This document shows, one piece after another, positions 1 through 54,374 of a DNA stretch of 64,000 bases; the first letter of the stretch is position 1, and the number at the start of each line of letters is the position of its first letter. The DNA is taken from positions 496,001-560,000 of the forward strand of contig NIVC01000004.1 in assembly GCA_002269645.1 (NCBI GenBank), read 5' to 3'. This DNA is from Macrostomum lignano. Lineage: Eukaryota. The notes beneath the pieces are model-generated. The model searched no databases. It saw only the letters and a program-made list of their open reading frames with translations, and was not told the origin of the DNA. Position numbers and translations under genes: made by a program.

Positions 1-226
1 CGCCCATCTACTTTAGTTGTCCATGAGTGAGTCAGCCTGGATACCATCATTTGACTGCCGATTTACTCGTAGTCTACGGTTAGGGTTTAGGTTAGAGTTG
101 GGATTTAGGCCGGGTTTAGGTTAGGTTTAGGGTTTAGATTTAGGTTAGGGTTAAGGTCAGCAGTCGATTTGTGGTTGTCAATTGTCGCAGAACCGAGTCA
201 GCCAAGATCAAGGGTCTTCTACTCAC

Positions 227-3200
227 TTTCAGGACGCGAACGTCGTGCACAATGTTGATGATGGTCAGGGGCAGCCAGGACAGGCTGAACACCACCGCGA
301 TGGTGACCAGCAGCAGGTTGGCCCGGCGCTGCCGCACGGCCTCGGCGGCTTCTCGGTTGGCCTGGTAGGCGGACCGGTGGTCGCCCCGCTGCTTCAGGCT
401 GCGCATCCGGTGCTGCAGGCGGACGCAGATTCTGGCATAGGCAGCCACCACAATGCCCAGAGGTACCAGGTACTGCACCACCATCACACCGCTGCCGTAA
501 GCTAGCTTAGCATATCGGATGAAAATTCGCGAAGTTGTCTCGCTGCAGATGTTCAGCGGCTTTTGATTTTGCAGCCGGTTCTGCTCGATGGTGGCGAACA
601 GAAACAGCGGGCTGGCCATCATGCCAGCGGCGCCCCAGATGGCCAGCAGGCACAGAGCCATGGTGCGCCGCTCCATCCTGGTGCGAGTTGGGTACACGAT
701 CACCTGCAGGTTAAGATGAGGCATGTAAAGTTGTGGCTGATAGAGTATGAGCTGTCGTGCTGTATAATCCAAGCTTTGGGCACCTAAATTTTCCCTTCTC
801 TTTGTACTGTGTTCGATGCTCAGTTCTTGGATGACTTCCCTTAACAGTAGAAAGACCACGCTATTTTTCCCATGGGGAAAGACCATGGGGGTGCATTACA
901 AATACACACGACCCATTTCACGATATCTCGCAAACCGAATTACTGATTTTTGTAAAAGTCCACCATACAGATCAAAATTTTCCGCCCTTTCCGACGAACT
1001 AACTTTCAAAGTCATCCGACGTCAGAATCGTCGAGATATTCAACGATTCTTGTCTAAGACACTGGTGGCAAGGACAACTAACACTACACTGTATAAATTT
1101 TTACGGTATATCCATATTGGCTCAATAATCTGGGTCCATCTGTCGCAGAAGCCTTTGTTCTCAGCATCACAGACACCAGGGTCTCCTTCATCTCCGTCTG
1201 GAGCATCGGCGGTGACCGTCGGGACCTTCAACAAAAGCACCCGATCGGCATCTCAGAGGCGGCTGCCTTCCCAAAACTGAAATGGAATAATCCTCTTCTG
1301 CATGCAGCATTCAGTCAGTAGACACAATCGGTGAATGAAATGGACGATGGCGACTCTCTAGGCTGACCTGTAGACATACAGGCGACCTTCAGGACCTTCA
1401 ACGGGGTGCCACCACGCGGCCCCGACGAGCTGGCACCCCCCACATTGTGATTTTTCTATCTAGACACCAAACCAGGCATGTCTGCATATTATACAATGGT
1501 CCAGCACCATGTTAAATTCGAAACTGCCGAACATCGTCAGCGGACTGCCACAACGGACAAATTCTACGGCATCCGACACCTTTGTCAGCCAGCTGAGCCA
1601 TCCTGTCCTTTTCGGGCCTGCCTCTGCGTCGACGAAACTCTGGTTGTCTACTGGGGTGTGGATTGTGACTTCACGGTCTTTCTGAAGGAGAAGCCCGTCG
1701 CAATGGTGCCAAGCTGTTCCTGCTGACATCGGCTGGGAATCCAGAGATTCAGGATGACATGGACATCCGCTATGTGTTCAATGCGGAAATCTGCACTGGC
1801 AAAGGACACTGCTGTCCACTACTTTTGCATCACAGGGATTTGATGCTCGGCTGGCCAAGGGCTCCGAGGTGTGGAGTGATGAGCAAGTTGTTTGCCGCTT
1901 GGCTGATCCATTCAAAGGACACTGGTACAACATCACATGTGACAGATTCTTCTCGAGTCCTGCGCTGGTCAATAACTTGTACCGAGAAATGGGATTCTCG
2001 TTTCTTGGAACAGTGATGCGCACTTGTGGTGGCCTGCCAGCCGATCTCAAGAATACAACTAAAACCATGGCTCCACACACGAGCGAATTCCGGTTTTCTG
2101 AGGAACTCACGTGTGTGTCCAACTGCCCCAAGGCGGGCCGAAACGTGATGTTGCTGTCCACCATGCATCACGACAGAAAATTGCTTCCCAATGGCAAGCC
2201 TGTAGAAATAGGCACGTTCTACAATTCTACCAAGAGTGGCACGGACACCTGTAACAGGATTTTCCGCACATCCGACTGCAAGCAAAATTCCGACTCATCA
2301 TGCGAGAAGGCAATCTTCTCCGGCGGCATACTCAACATAGCAGCTGTGAATGCCGCTGCTATCTGGAGACTGGCGCACCCGGAGCTCTGCCCCTCGCCGA
2401 ACTATCGCAACGAGTTCCAGCGCAAGGCAGCTGCGCAACTTCTGCAACCTCTGATCGAGGAGCGCTCGCAATCGGCCGCTCTTCTTCAAAATCTGTCCAA
2501 TCATCACAGGCTGATGTTCCAGCTCGCAGGTTGTCGACTCAACGACGAGCAAATGAAGGAACAGGCACGCGAAGCGGCGGCTGTGGTGTCAGTTGGTGGC
2601 AGAAAGCGCTGTGCAACACGCGCGAGACAAAAGTCAAAGGACGAGAAGCTTTGAGTGCGACAACAAGGAAGTGTTGCATGTGTGACGAAGGAATTTGCCG
2701 AAGACACACTGCGATGAAAATTGACTCCGCTTTTGTGTCTACGTGTCGGTGTTCAGATCCTTCTGCTTTGAATTTGCTGTACCATCATTTTTGACATGCT
2801 GTAATATCATTTTTGACATGCTGTAATATCATTTTTTACAAATAATATATTTTATATTTTTCAGTCGCGAGTTAAATCTGTAACTCTCCAATTTAACAAG
2901 GTGCAGGACCATTGTATAATATGCAGACATGCCTGGTCTGGTGTCTTAATATAAAAACGATGTTGGGGGTGCCACCTCATCGGGGCCGCGTGGTGGCACC
3001 CCGTTGAAGGTCCTGAAGGTCGTCCAGACAGAGCTGAATGCTGAACATGGTGCAGGACCATTGTATAATATGCAGACATGTCTGGTTTGGTGCCTTGATA
3101 GAAAAATCACGATGTTGGGGGTGCCAGCTCGTCGGGGCCGCAAGGTGGCACTCCGTTGAAGGTCCTGAAGGTCGCCTGTATGTCTAAAGGTCAGCCTAGA

Positions 3201-4769
3201 GAGTAGCCATCGTCCATTTCATTCACCGATTGTGTCTACTGACTGAATGCTGGATGCAGAAGAGGATTATTCCATTTCAGTTTTGGGAACGCAGCCGCCT
3301 CTGAGATGCCGATCGGGTGCTTTTGTTGAATCGAAGGTCCCGACGGTTTTGTGAGATTTTGTGAGCAGAAAAAATTGCTAATGTTGGTGTTTTTTTGTCA
3401 CCAGACACCCCGAGGAGAATCGTTGAATATCTCGACGATGCCGATTTTTTGTGATTCTCAAAGTTGCTCCATTGAATAGAGTGGAAAATTTTAGCCCGTG
3501 TTCTGGATTTTCATGGCAATTGGTTGAATATTTTCGGAGATACAGACAAAGGAAAAATGTGTGTACTTGAAATACACCCCCATGGTCTTTCTACTGTTAA
3601 ACATATACTTGTTTCAAATCCAGATATCTCGGTAGTAGTATATAGGGTTTTTTAGTTGGACAGTTTTTCTCGGATTTTTTCTTAGTCTAAGAATAAGAAT
3701 TTCCCTGCCCACCATCCACAATACGCTGTCATCGTATCAGTCACAAATAATGAGAAAGGCCGTGCGAACGCATTGTAAAATGAACAGCCTTTACCGTTGA
3801 TGGCAAGGAATCTCGCACTGGACAACGAAATATGAACTGACTGACTCACTGTTTTCTGCTATCGAGCTTTCTTGGACTCGAATCGTCACTAGCATATGAG
3901 CATGCAGCAATAATAGCTTAGGCTCTTTGCTACTTTTAGTTCATAAGGTCCTAATGTCCTAAAAGTCTCGTTACGATACTCGTAGAAGCTGACCTCTCAT
4001 TTCCAACCTCAAACTATTCTCTTTGTATTGAAGTTAAAGTGCCACTCAAGAACTGGCTGGCTTTGATCGCATGAGCATGGAGACTGAGGGATAGAGGCTG
4101 CTCTCGAGTTCGAAGGACCTTTGGGACACTCAATCCTCTGCATGCATCCACCAATGGAGAACCTAACTGGTTGCCTTTGAGAACATAGTGGCGCAGAATT
4201 CACCAAGGCTCAATACAAGTTGGCGTTGGCCAACCCTCAATCAGACAGTCTAAACAGCCACTCCATCATCTACTCACCTGGAAGCGGTCCAGTGCGATGG
4301 CTGTAATCGAAAACGTGGACACAAACATATTGAGACCGGTGAGAGTGTTGACCACTTTGCAGAGAAGCTCGCCAAATTCCCAGCTGATGTAGTCGGGGAA
4401 CAGGCGCAGCAGGTTGAGCGGCTGCGTGAAGAGGCACAGAATGAAGTCGGACAGGGCCAGGTTGAATATGAAGAGGTTCCGGGCGGTGCGCATGGCCCGG
4501 TTGCGGCACACAGTCAGCATGACGAGGCCATTGCCGAACGCACCGAACAGGATGAATAGACAGTAGACTCCGATGATGGCGGCCAGGATCGGCAGGCCGC
4601 GGTCGCGCCGGTCGCTGATGCCCCGCTCCATGTCGCTGAAGATCTTCGTATAGCGCGAGTCGTTGAGGCACACGAAGAAGTTGTACATCGGCATGGCTTC
4701 GGCCGCCTGGCTGCCGGCATTCAAGTGGTGAGCGCACAGGCGGAAGCGAGGATTTTGGAACACGGACAT
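227..4769 (-). CDS. Neuropeptide F/Y-type (NPFR-like) class A GPCR; partial, continues off the left edge
   Basis: Exon 4278..4769 from the likely ATG (acceptor CAG at 4800-4802 suggests the exon starts at 4799) encodes GAFGNGLV...RAMRTARNLFIFNLALSD...TAIALDRFQ, i.e. TM1-TM3. A GTGAGT donor begins at 4277. Exon 227..703 starts after CAG in phase 0 with VIVYPTR..., covers TM4-TM6 (FSLSWLPL) and ends at a GTGAGT donor at 226. The joined motifs RTARNLFI-N and DRxQVIVYPTR match NPF/NPY-family receptors from memory. TM7 is missing from the window. Confidence 0.88.
841..3600. mobile_element. piggyBac-type composite element flanked by TTAA, with long inverted arms
   Basis: TTAA at 841-844 and 3597-3600. 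Terminal inverted repeat CAGTAGAAAGACCA. Diverged inverted similarity 870-1050 vs 3400-3596, and a near-identical ~300 bp inverted arm 1210-1513 vs 3044-3347. Lies in the GPCR intron. Confidence 0.85.
1516..2760 (+). pseudogene. Degenerate, 5'-truncated piggyBac (PGBD-like) DDD transposase
   Basis: Motifs are spread over several frames: DKFYGIR, CVDETLV..KP, YVFNAEICTGK, ITCDRFFSSPAL..FLGTV, RNVMLLSTMH, YNSTKSGTD, LNIAAVNA, and a C-terminal Cys-rich tail (RKRC...KCCMCDEGICRRH). Frameshifts and stops are present. Confidence 0.9.
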
Positions 4770-4913
4770 GCCGTCCCCATTGGCGTCCAGCGTGATTTTC
4801 TGAGACGCATGAAGGGAAATGAAGTGCTTGTGACAGAGAAATGACCCCTTGAAATAATTGTTTCCAGCTTTTTTAGAATTTACGAGAATTCGTATTGGTT
4901 TCAACCTGACTCT

Positions 4914-11200: not shown

Positions 11201-14200
11201 TGCATTTACTCCCATCTTTGCCTTTTTCCTAACTGTTAACAAGTTTTTGTTTGAGCATGACTTCAAATTTAGAATCTATGCAAAAATAGTTCCGGGAATT
11301 AGAATTCAGTGGTTTAAAAATCTGTGGGTTTTCACAGCTTGTATCTCTACTGTATTCGTATTCTGCATCTGATGAGCCATCTGAATCAGGGCTCTCATCT
11401 TCCATGCCAAATCGTCTAGCAAATCGTTCTTGAGCTATAGGTCACACTGTATTCACTTCACTTACTTCTGGACATTCATGAATCATGACTTTTGTAGTAT
11501 GCTCACTACACTGTACTGACAATTTACTAATTGCTTCATGCCGCCACTAGATGACATACTGATTAGCTGTTATAAAAACGCGAAATCTGCACGCAGCACT
11601 AATTAGCTGGCGAGGCATTAAGCTTTAAAAATATGGTCATAGTTACGCCTGCCGTTTACCTAAAGTTTTTTCTTGGCTCTTTCATAGGTAAGTCGCATTT
11701 TTTATCGAAAACTAAGTCGCACGGCCAGCATAATTTCAGAAGTTGCGCATGTATGAGAATGCTACCAAAAACGCTACTAAGAACGCTACCCAAAGGTATT
11801 TAAATGAAATTCTGAGAAATAGTTAGGGAGTGAAAACAAGTATAATCAGGATAACTGTAGTTGGCAAACAGGAATAACCCCTGTAACAACTTGGTGGCAG
11901 TTAGTAAAGTTAGTTGGAGGACAGAAGAAAAAGCCTTGTTACAACTTTGGTTACAGCAGTAGGATTTTGTATCGTACGGGAATACCCCTAGCACAATTAA
12001 AACATAGATGCAGTTTAGGTGCGGTCTCATAACCTATTTTTCTATTAAAGCCTTATTTGCACTGCCTTAAAATAAGAAAAAAGAGAAATTGCACTTTGAG
12101 CCTTAAAATTGCACCATGAAAGTGAGCTTACGGTGCAATTTTGCACCCTTTCTCTCGCAAAAAAGAAAACCCTGCAAATGTCTGTACAATTATAACTTTG
12201 GTTCTATTTTCCTCCTATAATAAACAGCATATTAAAATTTGTTTCTTGACCTAAGACAATAAAGCTAAGCCTAACCTATTAAAAATATAAAAATAGTGAG
12301 AACTTTATTGAAATATTATATATTGAAATATTATATAATATATATATATATATATAACTATACTTGAAGATTAATTAAAAATTAAAAAATATATTTATTA
12401 TATTGGCTTAGTACAAAAGCACCTATTTTGTAATGTCTCAAATATAGGTCCTAGACTTAATGGGAAATAATTACCCTAACATAATCTATAATTTTGCCAA
12501 ATATGCCAGACTATGCCAATTAGCACATTTAATTGCCCTCAAATATCCTTTTGGCATAGTTGGCATAGTTATAATATAATATAAATTAGTATATTATTGT
12601 GCCAAATAGGAGTAATGATATCAGTTGTAAAACAATTATGATTGCTACAATTGCGCACTAATTATTAATAATTGTTATTATATTGATTTTTTTTATCTTA
12701 TCCATTTTTGTATGTCACTTGGCATAACTAAGGGACAATTATTTCCCAATGGGGTATAGTTTATTTTCATTCTAATGGAAGCCATATACATTTATAAAAT
12801 ATTTTTCTTTATAAAAAGATTTATTCTAAAGTTATATATTTGCAAAAATATATTTTTTAACTTTTCCCTTTGTATAAATATTGGTAAATCATGAGATCCT
12901 CACTGAAGTCCCTATACAAAGCTATATAAAACACTTATTAAAACTTGCATAAGTCATTCTCATATAAATCATACATAAAAGCTGAGTTTTTAAGTATTGG
13001 TATTACTGTGCCATTTTAGGATCCAAATTAAAAACTAGGATGCTAGCTGGCATCTATTATCTATGATATTTGCTTTACATCTTATGTAGAAAAAACTTAC
13101 CATATAATAACTTATAATCTAAGCCTTTAAATATAAATGATCTAATTAAACTATAAATAATAGATAACTTTTTTAAGTACTTTTTACACTAACTTTTTTA
13201 ATGTATTGATTTATAAAATTATCTGTATCAATATTATAAGCCATATAATATATTTTTTATCCTTCAATCTATGTATAAGCTTACTTCCTAATTTTTCCTT
13301 AGAATTATTTTTTAAATACCTTAAGTATTTATTGATATAAAATTGTCAACATACACAAATAAACTTTGTTCTAATAGACTTTGTTTACTTACAATATAGT
13401 TGAAAATCTGACTGACATCTGACTGATTGCAGTTGCTTTTAGCATGGGTTTGGCATAGGAAGAAATGTGTTACGGTCACAAGAAGTGACATTTTAATCTT
13501 TTATCTCAGTTTACACCTTCAATGAGTGTTGTCCTTATCTCCTATTGCATTTTGATGAAGATATTAAAAATAACTTTGTGTTTCCCCAACCCACCCCAGT
13601 CCGGCCAGTTCACAGAGGACATGATCCCCACCGTGGGCTTCAACATGCGAAAGATCACAAAGGGCAGCGTCACCATCAAGCTATGGGACATTGGCGGCCA
13701 GCCCCGCTTCCGCAGCATGTGGGAGCGCTACTGCCGCGGCGTCAACGCCATCGTCTACATGGTGGACGCGGCCGACGCCGACAAGCTGGAGGCGGCCAGG
13801 AACGAGCTGCACAACCTGCTCGACAAGCCGCAGCTGCAGGGCATCCCGGTGCTCGTGCTGGGCAACAAGCGAGACCTGCAGGGCTCCCTCAACGAGAGGC
13901 AGCTTATCGAGCGGCTCAGCCTTGACGGCATCACCGACAGAGAGATCTGCTGCTACTCCATCAGCTGCAAGGAGAAGGAGAATATCGGTCAGTGCCGCCC
14001 CTTCTCCCTCACATGCCCTCCTACCACCTTCCACACAACTCCCCGTTCTGATATTCTCTCCTTTCTACTTCTCATCCTCTCTTCTCCCCACTCTCTCTCT
14101 CTCTCACTCTACTCCCCACTTTCCCTAGACAGAATAGTCTGTCTAGACAATGTCACCTGTTAGAGAGGGGATAGTGTCAACTCTTAGACAGGGGATAGTG

Positions 14201-26361: not shown

Positions 26362-42270
<15,909 letters not shown>

Positions 42271-43499
42271 ATGGCCCTGCTCGCATCACTCTACTGAAAG
42301 CAGCTGGGAAAGGCAAATTTTCTTGTCGAAGCGGTGCAGTTCGGGATTGACACTTCCTCTGCATCTGAGGATCAAAAGCAGGCATTAAGAGAGCTACTTG
42401 AGCTGATATTTTTGTTTCAATGTAATTCAATGCGCCACACTTTTCCTGCTTTTGCTGTTTTGCTACCAGTCCTGTTGTTGCAGACACCCTGCTGCCGCGT
42501 TGCGAAGCAATTTTATATGCTTATTTTTGTCAAAAATCTGCTTTTACCGCTATCAGCATTGCTTTACTTATGCAGTCGCACCGTCACACGCTCCTCTCTC
42601 TCGGCTATCAAAGGTCCAAGGTCTCACTTTCGGTCTCGTCCATCTGCCACCTGCCGATCATCTCAGCTTTCTTCTATTTGAGCTTCTTGCCCTCTGACAC
42701 CAGCTGATCGTGTTCTTGTGTTACCTGTGAAAATGCTGGTGTGCATATTAATGTCAGGCAAATAATCCGGAGGCCATCGAATTATTGGCGGCTGTCCCTC
42801 AGCTGTCAGATGAAAAGTTGCTTGTGCTTATAATTTTTTATCAACTTTTATTTATAAGCAGAAAATTCAGAGAGCGGCTAAGGCAAGTAAAAGAGACTGA
42901 GAACTTTGATTAGCAGCGGGTTGCAGTGCGGTTTCGAGATGCGGAATAACGGAGAATATAAAATCTGCGGCATTCGCTTTTGCATTCAGCTGAGTGCAAC
43001 TTGTGGCAGTTACTTGGAAAAAACGGAGACCAGGTTTCTCTTTGAGAAAAGGTTAAAGGTTTGGGACAGCTGGGACAAGGAAGGACGGCAAAGCATAGCA
43101 ACAGAAATCTACAGCGCGACGCGGAGAAATTCGCAAAACTTCGAAATCAATTTGGAGAGGGTGGGATACGCTAAGACGTCAGTTTGCAAGATAATAAGCA
43201 ATATTAAATTTGCTGGGCTGAGATGAGTCGGCTTCCGGCATCATCAGGCGGCAGTCTGGAAGTCAGTGGTTGCACAAGCTTTGACATCAAGCAGCCAAGC
43301 AATTAAAAAGCAGGTGTCACACAAGACTGCGAGCTCACCAACTGCTTGCTGGCAGTCGCTGCTGCTTGCGGCTTCTGTAGCCCCGGTACGTGGCCTGGAT
43401 CTTCGTGGCCGCCTGGTGATACATCGGGTCCTGGAAGTGGCGGGGGTGACTTAGCGATTCCTGGTTGACTTTTAGGTCTAGCTGTGTGTGTTGGGGCTA

Positions 43500-43735: not shown

Positions 43736-44189
43736 GTTAGGGTTAAAATACCTCGTATCCATCATACTGCTCAGCTCTGTAGGTTGTGGCGTCGTTATGC
43801 TGCTGCTGGCCCGGCCTGGCATGGCTGGTTACGGGACTGTTGCTGTTAGACAGCACCTGGGCACGAATGAGATAAAAATGCAAGCCGTTAGTTGCTATGC
43901 AACATTGGCGCTGGCTGCGCTGCTATAGTGACGTTAGCAAGTGTGAGTAGATCATCCGATTAGCTGCTCATCCTGGCTGCCAATGCATTCTAATATCGCA
44001 ATGTTAAGCCGAAAAGCAAGCGCTGTTTTAGACACATGCGCTGTGTGAGATGCGCTGGAGTCAAACACCTACCGGATGGGGGGATGAGAGAGACAGGTTG
44101 GCGATAAAGGGGTTCTGCGGTGCGGGGAGCGTTTTGGGACATGGCGCGCTTGGGATGAGGCGGGCGGAAGCGGCCGAGGAGCATCCGCT

Positions 44190-47100
44190 TCAGGCGCCAC
44201 CGCTGCCCGCAGCCTTGCCGGCCTCCTGCCTGGCCACCTGCTTGCGGGTCTTGTAGCTGTTCACCGAGGCCTGGATGGACTTAGCGGCCGCCTTCTCCTC
44301 CTCCGACATTGGCTTCTGCTGCTTCTGCGGCTGCTGCTGCTGCTTTTGCTTCTTGGAGTTGGCCGCGTCGTTCTTCACCTCAATGGGCCGCTGGGCCACC
44401 TTGGAGGCCGCCTGTTTTCTGGCTTCAAAGCCCTTGACGCTCGACTGGATGGTGCCCGCGGCCTGCGCCTTCTCCTCCGGGCTCGCCTTCGCACCCTTGG
44501 GCTTCGCGTTGGCCTTGGAGTTGACCAGCTCGGGCCGGATCGTCACCGGGCCGCCCGTCCGCTTCTCTGCGGCCACTTTGCGGGTCTCGAACCCGCGGAT
44601 GCTGGCCTGGATCTGCCCGGCCGCCTTTGCCTTCTCGGCCTTCGGGCGGGCGGAGGTCGAATTGGGCTGGGGAGGTGAGGCTGGCTGAGTCTCCGAGTGG
44701 GGAATGTTTGAGTTGAGCTGTTTGGGAGGTGAGTCTGGTTGAGTCTCCGAGTGGGGAATGTTTGAGTTGAGCTGTTTGGGGGGTGAGTCTGGCTGAGTCT
44801 CCGAGTGGGGAATGTTTGAGTTGAGCTGTTTGGGAGGTGAGTCTGGCTGAGTCTCCGAGTGGGGAATGTTTGAGTTGAGCTGTTTGGGGAGGTGAGGCTG
44901 GCTGAGTCTCCGATTGGGGAATGTTTGAGTTGAGCTGTTTGGGAGGTGAGTCTGTCTAGGAAAGGTTGCTATACATGTACATATATTGAACAGCGGTGAC
45001 AAAACGTGCAACTGCCAGTAATAGAAGCAACAGTTTGGCAATTCGGTCCTGAATGAGGAAAAAACCAAGCAAGTGGCATAAAGTCAATCTACCAAGCATA
45101 AATATTTAAGTTCTACAAATAGGAGCCGGCAAAGCAGCCCTTTGAGCCACCTCTAAAAAGCCATGGTTTTGCGGTAAAGTGCCGTGTGCGCTGTGACCTG
45201 CAGTGCCATGTACAACACTCACTGCACAGCTTCAAGCATGCGGCAAGCCAGCCGAGTTTTCACATTTCATACTCACAAATTTCAGCTCTCAATCTAAATG
45301 ACGAGCATTGAGACTCCTGCATACTCACTGCGCCACTCACCCCTCAATGTAGATCCTGCACACTCACTGCGCCACTCACCACTCAATGTAGATCCTGCAC
45401 ACTCACTGCGCCACTCACCCCTCAATGTAGATCCTGCACACTCACTGCGCCACTCACCCCTCAATGTAGATCCTGCACACTCACTGCGCCACTCACCCCT
45501 CAATGTAGATCCTGTACACTCACTGCGCCACACACCACCCTCAATGTAGATCCTGCACACTCACTGCGCCACTCACCCTTCCTCAATGTAGATCCTGCAC
45601 ACTCACTGCGCCACTCACCACTCAATGTAGATCCTGCACACTCACTGCGCCACTCACCCCTCAATGTAGATCCTGCACACTCACTGCGCCACTCACCACT
45701 CAATGTAGATCCTGCACACTCACTGCGCCACTCACCCCTCAATGTAGATCCTGCACACTCACTGCGCCACTCACCCCTCAATGTAGATCCTGTACACTCA
45801 CTGCGCCACACACCACCCTCAATGTAGATCCTGTACACTCACTGCGCCACTCACCCTTCCTCAATGTAGATCCTGCACACTCACTGCGCCACACACCCCT
45901 CTCAATGTAGATCCTGTACACTCACTGCGCCATGCACCCCACTCAATGTAGATCCTGTACACTCACTGCGCCACACACCCCCCTCAATGTAGATCCTGTA
46001 CACTCACTGCGCCATGCACCCCACTCAATGTAGATCCTGTACACTCACTGCTCCACACACCCCACTCAATGTAGATCCTGTACACTCACTGCGCCATGCA
46101 CCCCACTCAATGTAGATCCTGCACACTCACTGCGCCACTCACCCCACTCAATGTAGATCCTGTACACTCACTGCGCCACACACCCCCCTCAATGTAGATC
46201 CTGTACACTCACTGCGCCATGCACCCCACTCAATGTAGATCCTGTACACTCACTGCTCCACACACCCCACTCAATGTAGATCCTGCACACTCACTGCGCC
46301 ACTCACCCCACTCAATGTAGATCCGGTACACTCACTGCGCCATGCACCCCACTCAATGTAGATCCGGTACACTGGCTTGCGGCTCATCACCTCACTCACC
46401 CCATGGATCCTACACACTTCATCACACACACAACAAACCACAGCTTTCCAACAGCTCTCATGAGTTCAAATTCACGCGCCAACCTCCTCGATGGAGACTC
46501 CGTCGCTGTTGCGCCGCCGCTGCCCGCCGGGGCTGCTGAACTCGCCGGGCTCGGTCTCGAAAGCCTCGCCCGCGTCAGCTCGCTTTGGAAAGGTTTTCGC
46601 CATAGTTGGTTAAAACGCTTTATGGGTCGACTGGAGGCGGAACAGAGACAACTAATTAGCATATCCAAGGTGCGTGGCCACCTTTGCTTACCTTGGTAGC
46701 TCCGCCTCCTTCACTATTGGTGGCTCTTGGATTCTGTTGAGCTTGGTCTCGCTGCGAGTCCTGCTTGCTTCTGCAAAGAGAGACGGATGAGGTGAGTGCC
46801 GGTGCATCGGAGGTTGGGCTCAGAATCCATGCAGCAAGAAGGTCTTTGATACTCACTTTCTGGACGAGTGCTTCTCTGGCGTGATGGGCTGCGACAAGTA
46901 CTTGATGGTCGACCTGAAGAGGTGCGCAATGGGCGATTGTTCGGTCTAAAGGTTTTCCAGAAATCTTGGTCAAGGATAAAAAAGGCTAATAAATGCAGCT
47001 AGTACAGGTATGAATGCAATTGTTCCTGTGAAGCCACACTACGCAATGCAAACTCTGAGGAAATCGAACTGTGAGCTGCAAAAACTGCTTGTTGAAAAAC

Positions 47101-49334
47101 ATAAAAAAGGTTGTAATGAAAACAGATTCTATCAGGAAATTTTCTATTAAAAAAGAACGCCTTAGAACGGTCTCGGCCTCACCACGCAGTGCTGTCGCTG
47201 AAAAAGGCCAAGATTACATGGACAGATGACAGATATTGCGTAACAATGCCACAATACCTGGCAGAAGCGCCAAAGATCAACAAATTTATTTAGAAAACGA
47301 ATCGCTCACTTTCTCTCAGCCTTGCCAAGAACGATGAGGGGCAGCTTCTGGCCGTACGGCCGGGACAGGAAGGGCTCGTGGCCGCCAGCTACGTAGTGCT
47401 TCTCGTGCTGCAGCTCCTGCGGCTCCCGGATGCGCCGGCCGCTGATGTCGAACAGCCTGCGGTGGGGAGGGGGGAACCAGTGGAATTCGCAGCGAACACC
47501 CGAACACAACAGCGGGTACGGCAGCAGTCAGTCGATAATGATGTCAAGCGCTCACTTTCTGATGGCCATGTTGTTAGGCAGGACCACTCGCTCCTCGACT
47601 GCCCGCAGCACCACCTCCATGCTGACCTGCTCGGATGGCCGAAGCATGACGATGATGGCCGGCGTGAACTCGTCACCGTTGCGGTACACCCTGGGGAAGG
47701 GGGAGCGCGGGGTTGTCTCAGTCAGAAAATTGATCCCACTCGTGGTTCCGGAGTACAGTTTATGGGGGAAGCAGACACAAGATAGTAATAATAATAATAT
47801 TTGCAGGAGGGCTGCGGGCACCCTGGAGCAAAACCTTCTTGGCGACATCGTCCCGCAACCAGTGGTGAAGCAATTTTGTCCATTTCGCCGACTCCTGAGC
47901 ACGCTAATACTGTACGTAGGCACGCGCTCACACAGGGGTACAGCGGCCGTTTGACTTTCTAATCCTCATGTGCGCTATTGGCTTTCTCGTTCGATTTCAG
48001 CAAAAGTGAATTCTATTTTGTCCGCTGCGCCTCCCGCCTACAGTTAGTGCATTCAATTTCGTGATCAGAAGAGCGCGGGGTGGTGGGTGCTACGGTAGTG
48101 AATTCTAATAAATTCTTGTTCTTGTTTTGTACCGCGAATTCCCCCCTCCAACGTTCTGTCCCGCTCACCTGATCGCCTTCGACTGCGAGCTGATCACATC
48201 CATCTTGGCGCCAAACCGAGGCTGCACGGACATCAGCTTCTTGTTGTGAACAACTGGCAGGATCTGCAGAGGCGGGGAGGGGCGTTCGTGATGACAAGGG
48301 GAGAACCGGGGGATCAAAGACAGCAGCGAAGAGTTGAGTCAATCAGAACTCACCGGCTCCAGCACGACTCGGTTGCTGCCCATCGGCTTCCTCGGTGAGG
48401 CCGTGGGCGATGCGCCGGAGCCCTTCGTCTCCGCGTGGCTCCCGTTGGCGCCGACCTCCGCCTCCGGGACGTAGCTGCAGCAGCATGGGAAATCAATGTA
48501 GAGGACTTGAGCCAGCTCAAGTAATAAACGAGCAATTGCTGCTTTTTCTAATTTGAAAATTTTATATAAAAATGGCAAGCAAAAGATTTCTGAATATTTA
48601 ATACGCTCATATCAGCGAATCCGTCAGCTAATTCCATCGATTTTGCCAAGCTCAAACGCATGTAGCTAGGCTCCCATCTTTGGGATGGTTGTCTCATTAG
48701 GGCAGAGGTCGGGGCAAAATTTTTACCTCAAGGGCCAGATAGATACAGAACCTACAGGTTACAGGTTACAGGTTTTATTAGGTTCCGTCACTTCGGGAAA
48801 GACAATGAGCCCTACAAAACCACAGGGAATTACGCTGACTCAACTCTCGGAATATCTACAGCTGAAACCCCTGCATGCGCCCATGGCTATATAAGAAATC
48901 CATGGATAAATTTTTTCCTGAGAATTATGGAATTGTTTTGACCCTACAACTTCAACCAATGCTCACGTCATTGGCTTAAACCGCTCGCCCCTGGCCAGCG
49001 CCACATAGTGTCCCTTGTCCTCGAAGCTGTCCAAATCATGGATGCGCCTCCGTCCTCGCTTCGGCGTCACGATGTTGCGCACCGCGCCGCGCAGTGGGTT
49101 CACCGACATGGTCACCTGTTCCAGGAAGACGTCCCAATCGCGTAGCTGGCGCCGGTTCAGCACAAACTTCTTGGAGGGCGCGAACACGTCGCCGTTGCGG
49201 AAAATGTACACGCACTTGGCTGTAGCCGAGGCCGACGACTGCGAGGCCTGTGGAGGACCTTCACCGCCGCCGGCTGGCGCCTCGCCGTTTTGCGCCGGCG
49301 GCTGCAGCTCGGTAGATTTCGGATCCGTAGCCAT
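44190..49334 (-). CDS. Doublecortin-domain protein (DCDC2-like, two DCX domains) with three C-terminal IQ motifs
   Basis: Exons 49334..48967, 48474..48354, 48263..48169, 47690..47556, 47456..47310, 46913..46857, 46770..46692, 44666..44190. All GT-AG and phase-consistent; 1479 nt, 492 aa. DCX1: VYIFRNGDVF..KFVLNRRQLRDWDVFLEQVT..GAVRNIVT. DCX2: VYRNGDEF..AIRKLFDISGRRI..HYVAGGHEPF. Last exon: IQASIRGFETRK, IQSSVKGFEARK, IQASVNSYKTRK. Confidence 0.85.
44675..44950. repeat. 54-bp minisatellite abutting the last acceptor of the DCX gene
   Basis: GGCTGAGTCTCCGAGTGGGGAATGTTTGAGTTGAGCTGTTTGGGAGGTGAGTCT, about 5 copies. Confidence 0.92.
45318..46368. repeat. 39-41-bp intronic minisatellite
   Basis: CACTCACTGCGCCACTCACCCCTCAATGTAGATCCTGCA, about 26 copies. 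Confidence 0.95.
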
Positions 49335-50951: not shown

Positions 50952-53105
50952 TCAGGCAAAGTCGGTGACCAAAGCGCTGGCGGGCAGCGAGCGCAGCACC
51001 GGCATGCCGGCAAAGTTGGTGCCCAGCACTTCGTCGGGCCGCAGCGGCAAGCTGGCCGACTGGCTGAGCAAAGCCGAGCAGCCGGCCAGCCAATGAGGCA
51101 GCGGCTGCTCGAGCTGCTGCCAGGTGGCCGACTGCGCACCGGCGTGGGCGCGCACCAGCGGCAGGCGGACCTCCGTCTGGAGGCGACGGCCGCCGTCCAG
51201 CGACACCAGCAACTGCAGGAAGTGCTGGCAGGTGAGCCGGTGCGAGTTCACCGTCTGTGCGAAGTCGCACGGCGTTGGCGACGGGATCGGGATCTTCAGA
51301 TCGTCGAAGCCGCACTCGATCACCTGCGGGGATGTGGAACCAAGCTTTACATAGATCTACTGGCAGATCCCACAGCCTGCACTGGCAGATCCCACAGCCT
51401 GCACTGGCAGATCCCACAGCCTGCACTGGCAGATCCCACAGCCTGCACTGGCAGATCCCACAGCCTGCACTGGCAGATCCCACAGCCTGCACTAACAGAT
51501 CCCACGGCCTGCACTAACAGATCCCACGCGACTGGCAGATCCCACAGCCTACACTTAACAGATCCCACAGCCTACACTTAACAGATCCCACAGCCTACAC
51601 TTAACAGATCCCACAGCCTACACTAACAGATCCCACAGCCTACACTAACAGATCCCACAGCCTACACTAACAGATCCCACAGCCTGCACTGGCAGATCCC
51701 ACAGCCTGCACTGGCAGATCCCACAGCCTACACTAACAGATCCCACAGCCTACACTTAACAGATCCCACAGCCTGCACTAACAGATCCCACGGCCTGCAA
51801 TAACAGATCCCGCAGCCTGCACTGGCAGATCCCACAGCCTGCACTAACAGATCCCACAGCCTACACTAACAGATCCCACAGCCTACACTTAACAGATCCC
51901 ACAGCCTACACTAACAGATCCCACAGCCTACACTAACAGATCCCACAGCCTACACTAACAGATCCCACAGCCTACACTGGCAGATCCCACAGCCTACACT
52001 TAACAGATCCCACAGCCTGCACTAACAGATCCCACGCGACTGACAGATCCCACAGCCTGCACTAACAGATCCCACGCGACTGACAGATCCCACGCGACTG
52101 ACAGATCCCGCAGCCTGACCTCGGGATCGCTGCCGGGCATGAGCATGGACCACCATGTAGAGCAGACGCTGACGCAGTGCGGACACTTGGTCGGATCGTG
52201 CGGCTGCAACTGCTGCAGCTGCTCGCCGTTGTCAACGCAGGCCACGGAGATGCGGCGCAGCAGCTTGATGGCGACGTTCTCGATGGTCCGCCGGGTCTCA
52301 TTGACCAGCCGCAGGGTGACGGTGAGAAACTCGCCGAAGCGGACAGCCTGCCGGTCCAGGCTGAGGCCGAGTCGCAGCGTCTTGCGCATGGCCGGGATGA
52401 CGGACAGGTTCAGCGAGTCATTCACCGAGAGCGCCTCCTCGGAGCCCGGCACTTCCTCGTCCACCAGCAGGTCGAGGCGGGCGCCGAAGCGCTGACTCTG
52501 CGGCGACGCCAGGCTGATGCTGTAGGCCACCCGGCAGGCCTCGGGCAGGTCGCTGGCCTCGCAGCAGAGCTCGTCGAACTCGGCAAAGTAGAAGCTGGCG
52601 GGCAGCAGGTTGGGCAGCGGCAGCTTGAAGGGGATCAGGTAGCTGCCGAACGGGATTGGCTGGGGCAGGCTGAGCAGCTCGTAGGACTGGTCGATGAGGC
52701 AGGCTGAGCTGCTCTGGCCCTTGCGCCGGCTCCACGTGACTGGAAATGGAGATTGCAGTTCGAGAGTGGACTACTCTTCGCTGGCTGGGTTCGCCCCTTT
52801 CAACCCCAGCCCCAGCAGCGGACCAGGGCAATAGGCTTCGGTCAGGACCCGCGCCCAGCGAGCGCCAGCCATTCCAGAGGTCCCAAACTCGATTCTATGT
52901 AATTCGCAGCTTGAAGTGCTCTATTGCTCATAGCTGCTATCAGACTACAGACGACAGAGCAGAACTAACCAGTCTCCGTGCCCTGGATGCGAATCTGCAG
53001 CGAGCGAATCTGCGTTGGCCGGCAGATGCAGATGTAGGCGGCGCCGTAGACAATCTCGCCGGCATGGTAGCTGCTCTGGTTGAGGCACAGGGCCGCTTCG
53101 TTCAT
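50952..53105 (-). CDS. Arrestin-domain-containing protein (alpha-arrestin-like)
   Basis: Exons 53105..52970 (MNEAALCLNQSSYHAGEIVYGAAYICI..IRSLQIRIQGTET), 52739..52120 (VTW..GSYLIPFKLPLPNLLPASFYF..VAYSI..LSLDRQAVRFGEFLTVTLRLVNETRRTIENVAIKL) and 51323..50952 (..LTCQHFLQL..EVRLPL..*). Phases match; 1128 nt, 375 aa. The YxxGExVxG, GxY.FPF.LP.LP.SF and L.I.N.T motifs fit Arrestin_N/Arrestin_C. Confidence 0.75.
51352..52117. repeat. 22/23-bp minisatellite filling arrestin intron 2
   Basis: CAGATCCCACAGCCTGCACTGG and CAGATCCCACAGCCTACACTAA variants, about 34 copies. Confidence 0.95.
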
Positions 53106-53244
53106 GGCTGCTTCTGCTTGGCTTGTGGGCCTGTTCCGGCTGCTGTCAGCTCTACGAGTCTGGGGGACTCTGCGCGCTGGAAGTTGTGCCCGTTGGAGGT
53201 TAATACGGGGGTTTGGAAATCAGTGCGGACATAAAAACTGAGAC

Positions 53245-54044: not shown

Positions 54045-54302
54045 TTAGACTTCAGTTTTCTCTGGCGGCGGTCCGCACGGCTGCAGCATCTTCTCCATCA
54101 GGTTGAACCTGACTCGGGCCCGGCTCTCATTCTCAGCGATGGCAATCATGTTGAGCAAGTCCGGGTGGCCCTGCACAGAGGCGCAGGTGTCCCGGTGCTG
54201 GTTGGTGAGCCACTCCCACTTGTTTGTGTCGGCGTGGCCAGTGCCAACATACTTGGCCTGGAGGTGCTCTAACTGGGTGTGCACGTTGAACCTCTCGCCC
54301 AT
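54045..54302 (-). CDS. SF3B5: Splicing factor 3B subunit 5
   Basis: Single exon, 85 aa: MGERFNVHTQLEHLQAKYVGTGHADTNKWEWLTNQHRD...ENESRARVRFNLMEKMLQPCGPPPEK, unmistakably SF3B5/SF3b10. Confidence 0.97.
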   Translation of the reverse strand: MGERFNVHTQLEHLQAKYVGTGHADTNKWEWLTNQHRDTCASVQGHPDLLNMIAIAENESRARVRFNLMEKMLQPCGPPPEKTEV

Positions 54303-54374
54303 GACTGAGATTGCGCTGAAGTTTCAGTGGGATGCAGGCTTTTGTGTCTGAACTGTTTCTTGTAGGAACTTGGA

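Follow-up and report, generated by a model that had tools for sequence, protein, structure and literature searches.

The question raised by the locus described here is whether a single gene of Macrostomum lignano joins two doublecortin (DCX) domains to IQ motifs, and whether such a protein is particular to this animal. The locus lies on the minus strand, from 49334 to 44190, of a stretch of 64,000 nucleotides (nt) taken from contig NIVC01000004.1 of assembly GCA_002269645.1 (contig positions 496,001 to 560,000), which is called the window in the following and whose own numbering is used throughout. An earlier reading of this DNA without database searches (the sequence-only reading) had proposed an eight-exon gene with tandem DCX domains and three neuromodulin-like IQ motifs, plausibly specific to its lineage. 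Our analysis revealed that the DCX exons and the IQ-like exon 8 sit on one transcript-supported mRNA, whereas the DCX+IQ architecture is, as judged from sequence comparisons, not lineage-specific to flatworms. As to its function, we infer from the sequence that this single gene probably encodes a DCX-type microtubule binder of cilia or flagella, with a basic IQ tail that would dock calmodulin.

The gene model was rebuilt from the raw sequence and comprises eight exons and seven introns. All introns are of the GT..AG type and the exon phases are consistent throughout, which reproduces the eight-exon model proposed before, whose product of 492 amino acids (aa) is near-identical to the GenBank protein PAA94678.1 (BOX15_Mlig016684g1, 483 aa). 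The latter maps to the same contig and assembly with a coding sequence span of 5145 nt, which equals that of the proposed gene. The exact protein was deposited in GenBank as early as 2017 (PAA94678.1), and for another M. lignano copy both Pfam domains (DCX, IQ) are already listed in UniProt. Overall, the encoded protein is 97-100% identical to M. lignano proteins. The junction between the last linker exon and the IQ exon had been placed at 46692 to 44666, so that exon 8 would extend from 44666 to 44190. The acceptor at 44666 adds nine codons (PNSTSARPK) in the same frame as a second acceptor located 27 nt downstream at 44639. With the second acceptor the junction reads ...GGGATK/AEKAKAAG and all 483 aa of the translation agree with PAA94678.1. 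Thus, the proposed join of exon 7 to the IQ exon is borne out by the RNA-guided models, whereas the acceptor has to be moved from 44666 to 44639. The exon 7-exon 8 junction is annotated alike in three M. lignano copies of nearly identical sequence, two of which were confirmed to lie on different scaffolds, and ...GGGATK/AEKAKAAG is found in the copies PAA84147.1 and PAA60723.1. The GenBank annotation of the assembly was generated from a genome-guided assembly of RNA sequencing (RNA-seq) data by using StringTie, TACO, de novo assembly, TBONE, and TransDecoder (PMC5730564). Because the RNA-seq-guided models of PAA94678.1 and its copies share the junction, the exon 7-exon 8 join is transcript-supported.

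Intron 7, which is removed at this junction, is unusually long with 2 kb. About half of it consists of a 41-nt minisatellite with 26 copies (45315-46373), and its 3' end is occupied by a 54-nt tandem repeat with 5.3 copies (44670-44954) that adjoins the acceptor at 44666. The reading frame of exon 8 continues without a stop through the 54-nt repeat, all units of which have a phase-0 AG acceptor. As part of a coding exon it was nevertheless rejected, since the GenBank models and two of three predictions on the older ML2 assembly (P0085, P0086) begin the exon at 44639. An exact 20-nt core of the 54-nt unit occurs five times in the window and is absent from the other copy of the locus (L001).

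Upstream of intron 7 the exons encode the two DCX domains. Exon 1 (48967-49334) starts with the ATG at 49334 and encodes an acidic N-terminus together with DCX domain 1 (about 48967-49217), for which the best Pfam DCX stretch covers residues 58-119. Exon 2 (48354-48474) encodes the linker between the DCX domains, shows AG/GT borders and a fitting phase, and matches PAA94678.1 identically. Exon 3 (48169-48263) comprises the end of this linker and the first part of DCX domain 2, exon 4 (47556-47690) the core of the domain (VYRNGDEF...), and exon 5 (47310-47456) its end, whereby the domain extends over about 47348-48185 including introns. As DCX domain 2 exists only after splicing of exons 3, 4, and 5, their junctions are independently supported. 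Exon 6 (46857-46913) encodes a basic linker and exon 7 (46692-46770) a further linker, which ends with ...GGGATK at the donor gtaagc. The presence of two DCX domains was confirmed in three ways. Pfam DCX (PF03607) matched the 492-aa model in two stretches (E=2.3e-28, 98.5 bits versus a cut-off of 22), and with two such domains above the gathering score the protein belongs to the tandem-DCX class of the doublecortin superfamily. AlphaFold2 (AF2) predicted with confidence that residues 40-125 and residues 190-275 each form a ubiquitin-like domain, the predicted local distance difference test score (pLDDT) being about 85-91 (about 85-90 for the first and about 84-92 for the second). Finally, the second DCX domain, with exon 4 at its core, aligns to the solved human DCDC2 DCX domain 2DNF (E=5.8e-7), which is the best match among solved structures; the matches in the PDB include DCDC2, DCLK, and DCX domains.

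The GenBank form of exon 8 (44190-44639, stop codon TGA at 44192-44190) holds three IQ-like repeats, namely AAGQIQASIRGFETRK (44624-44577), AAGTIQSSVKGFEARK (44462-44415), and AAAKSIQASVNSYKTRK (44291-44241). All three had been quoted by the sequence-only reading and were found exactly. When the six frames of the window, about 128,000 residues, were scanned for the strict IQ pattern [FILVM]Qxxx[RK]Gxxx[RK], five matches were obtained, three of which are located in the DCX gene on its own strand; the remaining pair stems from a single inverted repeat, with one match in each arm. Since three of the five matches fall in this gene, the IQ-like motifs are not due to chance. The consensus [FILV]Qxxx[RK]Gxxx[RK] is fitted by repeats 1 and 2 as well as by a fourth repeat located downstream (see below), but not by repeat 3 (IQASVNSYKTR). 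Against Pfam IQ (PF00612) the 492-aa model reaches 10.7 bits (E=0.52), which is below the gathering cut-off of 20.3. Repeats 1-3 are weak IQ motifs. From the start of one repeat to that of the next there are 54-58 residues, all four repeats have the prefix AA-x-x-IQ-[AS]-[ST], and the tail in which they are embedded is strongly basic (net charge +20, pI 10.2). The label "neuromodulin-like" had to be abandoned as a family assignment, because no match to a neuromodulin (GAP-43)/neurogranin Pfam family was obtained even with thresholds of E<=1 and E<=10; what is shared is no more than a generic AA-x-K-IQ-A-S-x-RG prefix, which does not go beyond the general IQ consensus.

A further IQ motif is found beyond the annotated stop codon. 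Exon 8 contains an internal donor, CGCAAGCAG/gtggcc (CAG/gtggcc), after position 44238, 48 nt before the annotated stop. If this donor is spliced, two candidate exons with good splice sites follow in phase. Candidate exon 9, VLSNSNSPVTSHARPGQQQHNDATTYRAEQYDGYE (43752-43856), is bordered by ...tgcccag/GTG and GAG/gtatttt, and candidate exon 10, DPMYHQAATKIQATYRGYRSRKQQRLPASSW (43335-43430), has the acceptor ...cttccag/GAC and a TGA at 43337-43335. The predicted product comprises 534 aa and ends with ...YEDPMYHQAATKIQATYRGYRSRKQQRLPASSW. Candidate exon 10 contains the fourth IQ, AATKIQATYRGYRSRK (43412-43365), which is the only canonical IQ of the gene and passes Pfam IQ with 27.5 bits as a peptide and 25.5 bits within the 534-aa model (cut-off 20.3); solely through this predicted exon is the Pfam IQ threshold reached. 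Both candidate exons are present in three independent predictions on the older ML2 assembly (P0002, P0085, P0086). Furthermore, the 226-residue tail of the 534-aa form is collinear with the C-terminus of "DCDC2B" from the cestode Sparganum proliferum (P0246, E=2e-15), whereby each M. lignano repeat pairs with a canonical IQ of the cestode and AATKIQA-YRGYR-RK is paired near both C-termini. Between the annotated stop and 42300 there is only one AATAAA (42847-42852, minus strand). It is located beyond candidate exon 10 and is likely the poly(A) signal of the DCX gene. On balance we lean towards the existence of a spliced four-IQ isoform of 534 aa, which is predicted rather than transcript-proven. 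Comparison with the copy on NIVC01000387.1, which is about 96-98% identical, was rejected as a test of coding constraint on exons 9 and 10. The differences amount to 9/477 nt in exon 8, 8/382 in intron 8, 3/105 in exon 9, and 1/93 in exon 10, and since exons and introns are equally similar the comparison has no power.

In order to see how widespread the combination is, an exhaustive phmmer search of 1.84 billion representatives was used, which yielded 490 relatives, the best 150 of which were examined for the strict IQ pattern. The pattern was present in 15 of these 150, whereby one of the 15 is a tail-only match and one looks spurious. The architecture was confirmed by cluster look-ups and Pfam scans, and for Mya, Mizuhopecten, and Gnathostoma by precomputed Pfam annotation. 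Tandem DCX domains occur together with 11 Pfam-significant IQ stretches in the gastropod Lymnaea stagnalis (CAL1538719.1), with eight in the bivalve Mytilus galloprovincialis (XP_076083325.1), with five in the bivalve Pecten maximus (XP_033726436.1), and with six in cestodes (Sparganum/Spirometra; Sparganum proliferum BHF63762.1). One significant stretch each was found in the annelid Owenia fusiformis (CAH1774299.1), the nemertean Tubulanus polymorphus (XP_074657000.1), and the rotifers Adineta ricciae and A. vaga, and one with a score exactly at the cut-off in the tunicate Styela clava (XP_039253834). DCX together with eight IQs is present in isoforms of the bivalve Mya arenaria, and DCX+IQ proteins were also found in Mizuhopecten yessoensis and the nematode Gnathostoma spinigerum. 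Two further Logan or JGI sequences share the tandem DCX and IQ architecture. Thus, invertebrate DCDC2-like proteins with tandem DCX domains and one to more than 11 C-terminal IQ motifs occur in at least six phyla, RefSeq models included. The suggestion of a lineage-specific protein does not hold against this distribution across molluscs, an annelid, a nemertean, rotifers, cestodes, a tunicate, and a nematode; according to the Pfam results, DCX+IQ is common among invertebrate DCDC2 orthologues. The RefSeq isoforms X1-X4 of Tubulanus contain 2, 1, 0, and 2 IQs, respectively, and Mytilus isoform X26 was likewise seen among isoforms of variable IQ content, which suggests that IQ cassettes are alternatively spliced in the DCDC2-like genes of other invertebrates.

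No IQ was found in the vertebrate DCDC2/DCDC2C matches, neither by precomputed Pfam annotation nor by the strict pattern, nor in the single RP1 match (partial, from a bird), nor in the echinoderm, hemichordate, and Ciona matches that were checked. The vertebrate DCDC2, DCDC2B, and DCDC2C matches recovered thus do not have the IQ arrays carried by the invertebrate orthologues. The statement of the sequence-only reading that vertebrate DCDC2, DCX, and RP1 are not known to have IQ motifs therefore stands for the DCDC2/DCDC2C matches and one partial bird RP1; no DCX or DCLK protein was among the matches. Because the architecture is present in many invertebrates and absent from all vertebrate matches recovered, the simplest reading of these comparisons would be that DCX+IQ is an old bilaterian feature that was lost in vertebrates, and not a flatworm invention. 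A search with a profile built from the M. lignano protein and 12 invertebrate DCX+IQ relatives returned essentially the earlier match set, without the alignment's own members, and is uninformative for architecture counts. No paper describing the combination of DCX and IQ was found, nor a relevant one that connects doublecortin or DCDC2 to calmodulin or to Macrostomum, and no functional characterisation of the invertebrate DCDC2-like IQ proteins was found in the searchable literature. A survey of the DCX superfamily describes kinase and HELP/WD fusions without mentioning IQ (PMC1550402). Automatic annotation thus records the combination, which the literature, as far as searched, neither discusses nor tests.

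With regard to family placement, the named matches outside Macrostomum are all DCDC2 or DCDC2C, apart from unnamed rotifer products, which assigns the protein to the DCDC2 type. The best named matches, DCDC2/DCDC2C, have E values of 1e-24 to 1e-15 at about 30-35% identity over the DCX pair. The profile mentioned above yielded E values of about 1e-95 for vertebrate DCDC2 and of 5e-28 for RP1; as DCDC2 is matched far better than RP1, the invertebrate DCX+IQ proteins are of the DCDC2 type. Two motifs that follow the DCX domains, D-x-D-DGG[VI]FKAK and DTKVDLP[IV]DQ...E-rich, are kept by most aligned invertebrate and vertebrate DCDC2 members but are absent from M. lignano and the cestode in the alignments. 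This hallmark is derived from the alignments and is not a curated definition. Since the conserved middle motifs are absent, the locus would be placed as the M. lignano orthologue of the DCDC2/DCDC2C branch on best hits only. Compared to the other invertebrate DCDC2-like IQ proteins, it has the same order of N-terminal tandem DCX domains and C-terminal IQ motifs, and the cestode tail aligns with it IQ for IQ; isoform-dependent IQ content, as seen in Tubulanus, may hold for M. lignano as well. In contrast to M. lignano with its degenerate repeats 1-3, most of these proteins have Pfam-significant IQs, and most non-flatworm members keep DDGGVFKAK and DTKVDLPIDQ. With vertebrate DCDC2/DCDC2C it shares tandem DCX domains of the same subfamily, whereas the C-termini of the vertebrate proteins are unrelated to the M. 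lignano tail. The tail also matches an ASPM-like protein from Lepeophtheirus salmonis (XP_040569707; E=1.6e-36, 13 stretches), which consists of ~59-residue repeats with one IQ each after E-E-A-A-T-K; this match concerns the tail and the IQ repeat unit only and is no evidence of orthology. In DCLK, with its kinase, and in Drosophila DCX-EMAP, the DCX tandem likewise serves as a portable microtubule anchor for varied effector modules, whereas the effector module in M. lignano is an IQ array. DCX-EMAP is reported to act in ciliated mechanoreceptors (PMC2892299; PMC1550402).

Tandem DCX domains bind to the microtubule lattice, as is established for DCX and DCLK, and M. lignano possesses a multiciliated epidermis and flagellated sperm. 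In the function that we propose, the DCX pair would serve as an anchor on microtubules of cilia, flagella, or the cytoplasm, and the IQ repeats would be docking sites for calmodulin or for a similar light chain with EF-hands. Such docking might concentrate the Ca2+ sensor on the microtubule lattice, or calmodulin might mask the basic tail and thereby lower or tune the affinity for the lattice. On this reading the tail is strongly basic and for the most part disordered, and it is built from repeats of ~54-58 residues, each centred on an IQ-type helix, with three repeats in the 483-aa form and a fourth, canonical one if intron 8 is spliced. A ciliary or flagellar site is consistent with what is described for related proteins, as DCDC2 is reported to localise to primary cilia (PMC3116825) and DCDC2C appears in a list of proteins of the flagellar tip (PMC6281473).

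Several points weigh against this proposal. Calmodulin binding and ciliary localisation of the M. lignano protein are both inferred from sequence, and no expression data for Mlig016684 and Mlig018380 were found in the supplements of PMC5730564 and PMC5816591. The AF2 model of the 534-aa form confirmed the DCX domains but gave a pLDDT below 50 for the tail, with helices only for repeats 3 and 4. The RNA-guided GenBank models end at 44190 with intron 8 read through and leave out the fourth IQ, whereas the 534-aa form is based on ab initio predictions, splice-site logic, and collinearity with orthologues. The missing post-DCX motifs count on the same side, and so do the repeats themselves, since none of the peptides of repeats 1-3 alone gave a match to Pfam IQ, and repeat 3 has N-S instead of [RK]-G and thus no [RK]G core. 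The last two observations lead to the main rival explanation, in which repeats 1-3 would be decayed relics without calmodulin binding, the tail would be a basic disordered extension contacting the acidic tubulin tails or other partners, and any docking would be confined to IQ4 of the longer isoform. The gap between the silent peptides and the 27.5 bits of IQ4 fits this explanation, as does the net charge of the tail, and the canonical state of the positionally equivalent cestode repeats would suggest that decay took place in Macrostomum. The Pfam scores and the cestode comparison thus favour some decay. However, repeats 1 and 2 still fit the minimal IQ consensus IQxxx[RK]GxxxR, binding is compatible with Pfam scores below the threshold, and the repeat register as well as the AA-x-x-IQ-[AS]-[ST] prefix are kept in all four repeats. 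We regard a complete loss of binding in repeats 1-3 as unlikely, albeit as an explanation to be taken seriously.

It could also be that the IQ array recruits another EF-hand protein, for instance centrin or a light chain related to calmodulin, or that it forms a stiff spacer helix as in the necks of myosin and ASPM, without a regulatory role for Ca2+. Myosins bind dedicated light chains through their IQ motifs, and the best non-DCX match of the tail is the ASPM-like IQ array with its period of ~59 aa. A spacing of 54-58 residues, however, leaves long non-helical linkers of low complexity between the motifs, unlike a continuous lever arm, and no specific evidence points to another ligand, which makes this explanation quite improbable. 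Even less can be said for the idea that the IQ exon or exons are part of another transcript. Here, the DCX gene would end at an alternative exon from 46630 with a stop codon in frame (...ATKSTHKAF*), and a second, small gene would have its ATG at 46603 and be spliced in phase to the IQ exon from the donor 46484/46483. On paper the phases allow either alternative, the length of intron 7 and its wealth of tandem repeats would suit a gene boundary, and M. lignano has polycistronic precursors that are resolved by trans-splicing (PMC5730564). On the other hand, TBONE, which cuts boundaries at trans-splice and poly(A) sites (PMC5730564), made no cut here, exon 7 is followed by the IQ exon in all three RNA-guided GenBank models of the near-identical copies, and orthologues of at least six phyla, RefSeq models included, have DCX-DCX-IQ in one protein. 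We therefore consider separate transcripts to be extremely improbable; the assignment of the DCX pair and the IQ exon to one gene, as made by the sequence-only reading, agrees with both the annotated junction in three copies and the domain order of the orthologues.

Preferring a calmodulin-docking DCX protein, one may go a step further and suppose that the ancestral bilaterian DCDC2 was a calmodulin-docking microtubule-associated protein of cilia or flagella, that its IQ array was lost in vertebrates, and that isoforms in M. lignano vary their calmodulin capacity through splicing or retention of intron 8. This is a tentative idea, which we deem possible but less than likely. If it is true, the variable IQ cassettes of Tubulanus would hint at a general tuning of Ca2+ sensitivity at the isoform level. 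The M. lignano gene alone matters little, and its modest value is a comparative one, namely that IQ arrays occur in invertebrate DCDC2 orthologues across several phyla. If these arrays bind calmodulin, Ca2+ signalling would be linked directly to a ciliary microtubule binder of the DCX family. DCDC2 is a candidate gene for human ciliopathy and dyslexia, and M. lignano, for which transgenesis and RNA interference are available, offers a workable system for the link between IQ motifs and DCDC2.

The upstream neighbours of the DCX gene on its strand are a gene with an arrestin domain (about 50952-53174) and, further away, SF3b10 (about 54045-54311), both mapped from a second locus (L002). A 22-nt tandem repeat with 35 copies (51364-52117) lies inside the span of the arrestin gene. 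Older ML2 predictions fuse arrestin and DCX into proteins of 899-921 aa (P0085, P0086); these fusions were treated as chimeric ab initio predictions, since arrestin and DCX are distinct genes in the RNA-guided annotation. On the plus strand, an open reading frame (ORF) of 380 aa without Pfam match (41128-42270) runs towards the DCX gene and faces its 3' end; at neither of the two loci consulted does the public annotation show a gene there.

In the remaining window, a rhodopsin-family G protein-coupled receptor (GPCR) is present in two halves on the minus strand, with positions 1-85 of the Pfam 7tm_1 profile at 4266-4904 and positions 86-228 at 140-886. Between the halves there is an ORF for a piggyBac-type transposase (DDE_Tnp_1_7) on the plus strand (1869-2654), which is flanked by inverted repeats of about 290 nt (1227-1513 and 3044-3330, 95%). 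This looks like a DNA transposon lodged in a GPCR intron (region 140-4904). An intronless-looking ORF on the plus strand (13522-14163) matches Pfam Arf (E=7.6e-35) and codes for a small GTPase of this family. Finally, blocks of ~31-34% GC are found at 8-10 kb, 12-14 kb, and 54-58 kb, with 42% at 10-12 kb, against a background of about 50-55%.

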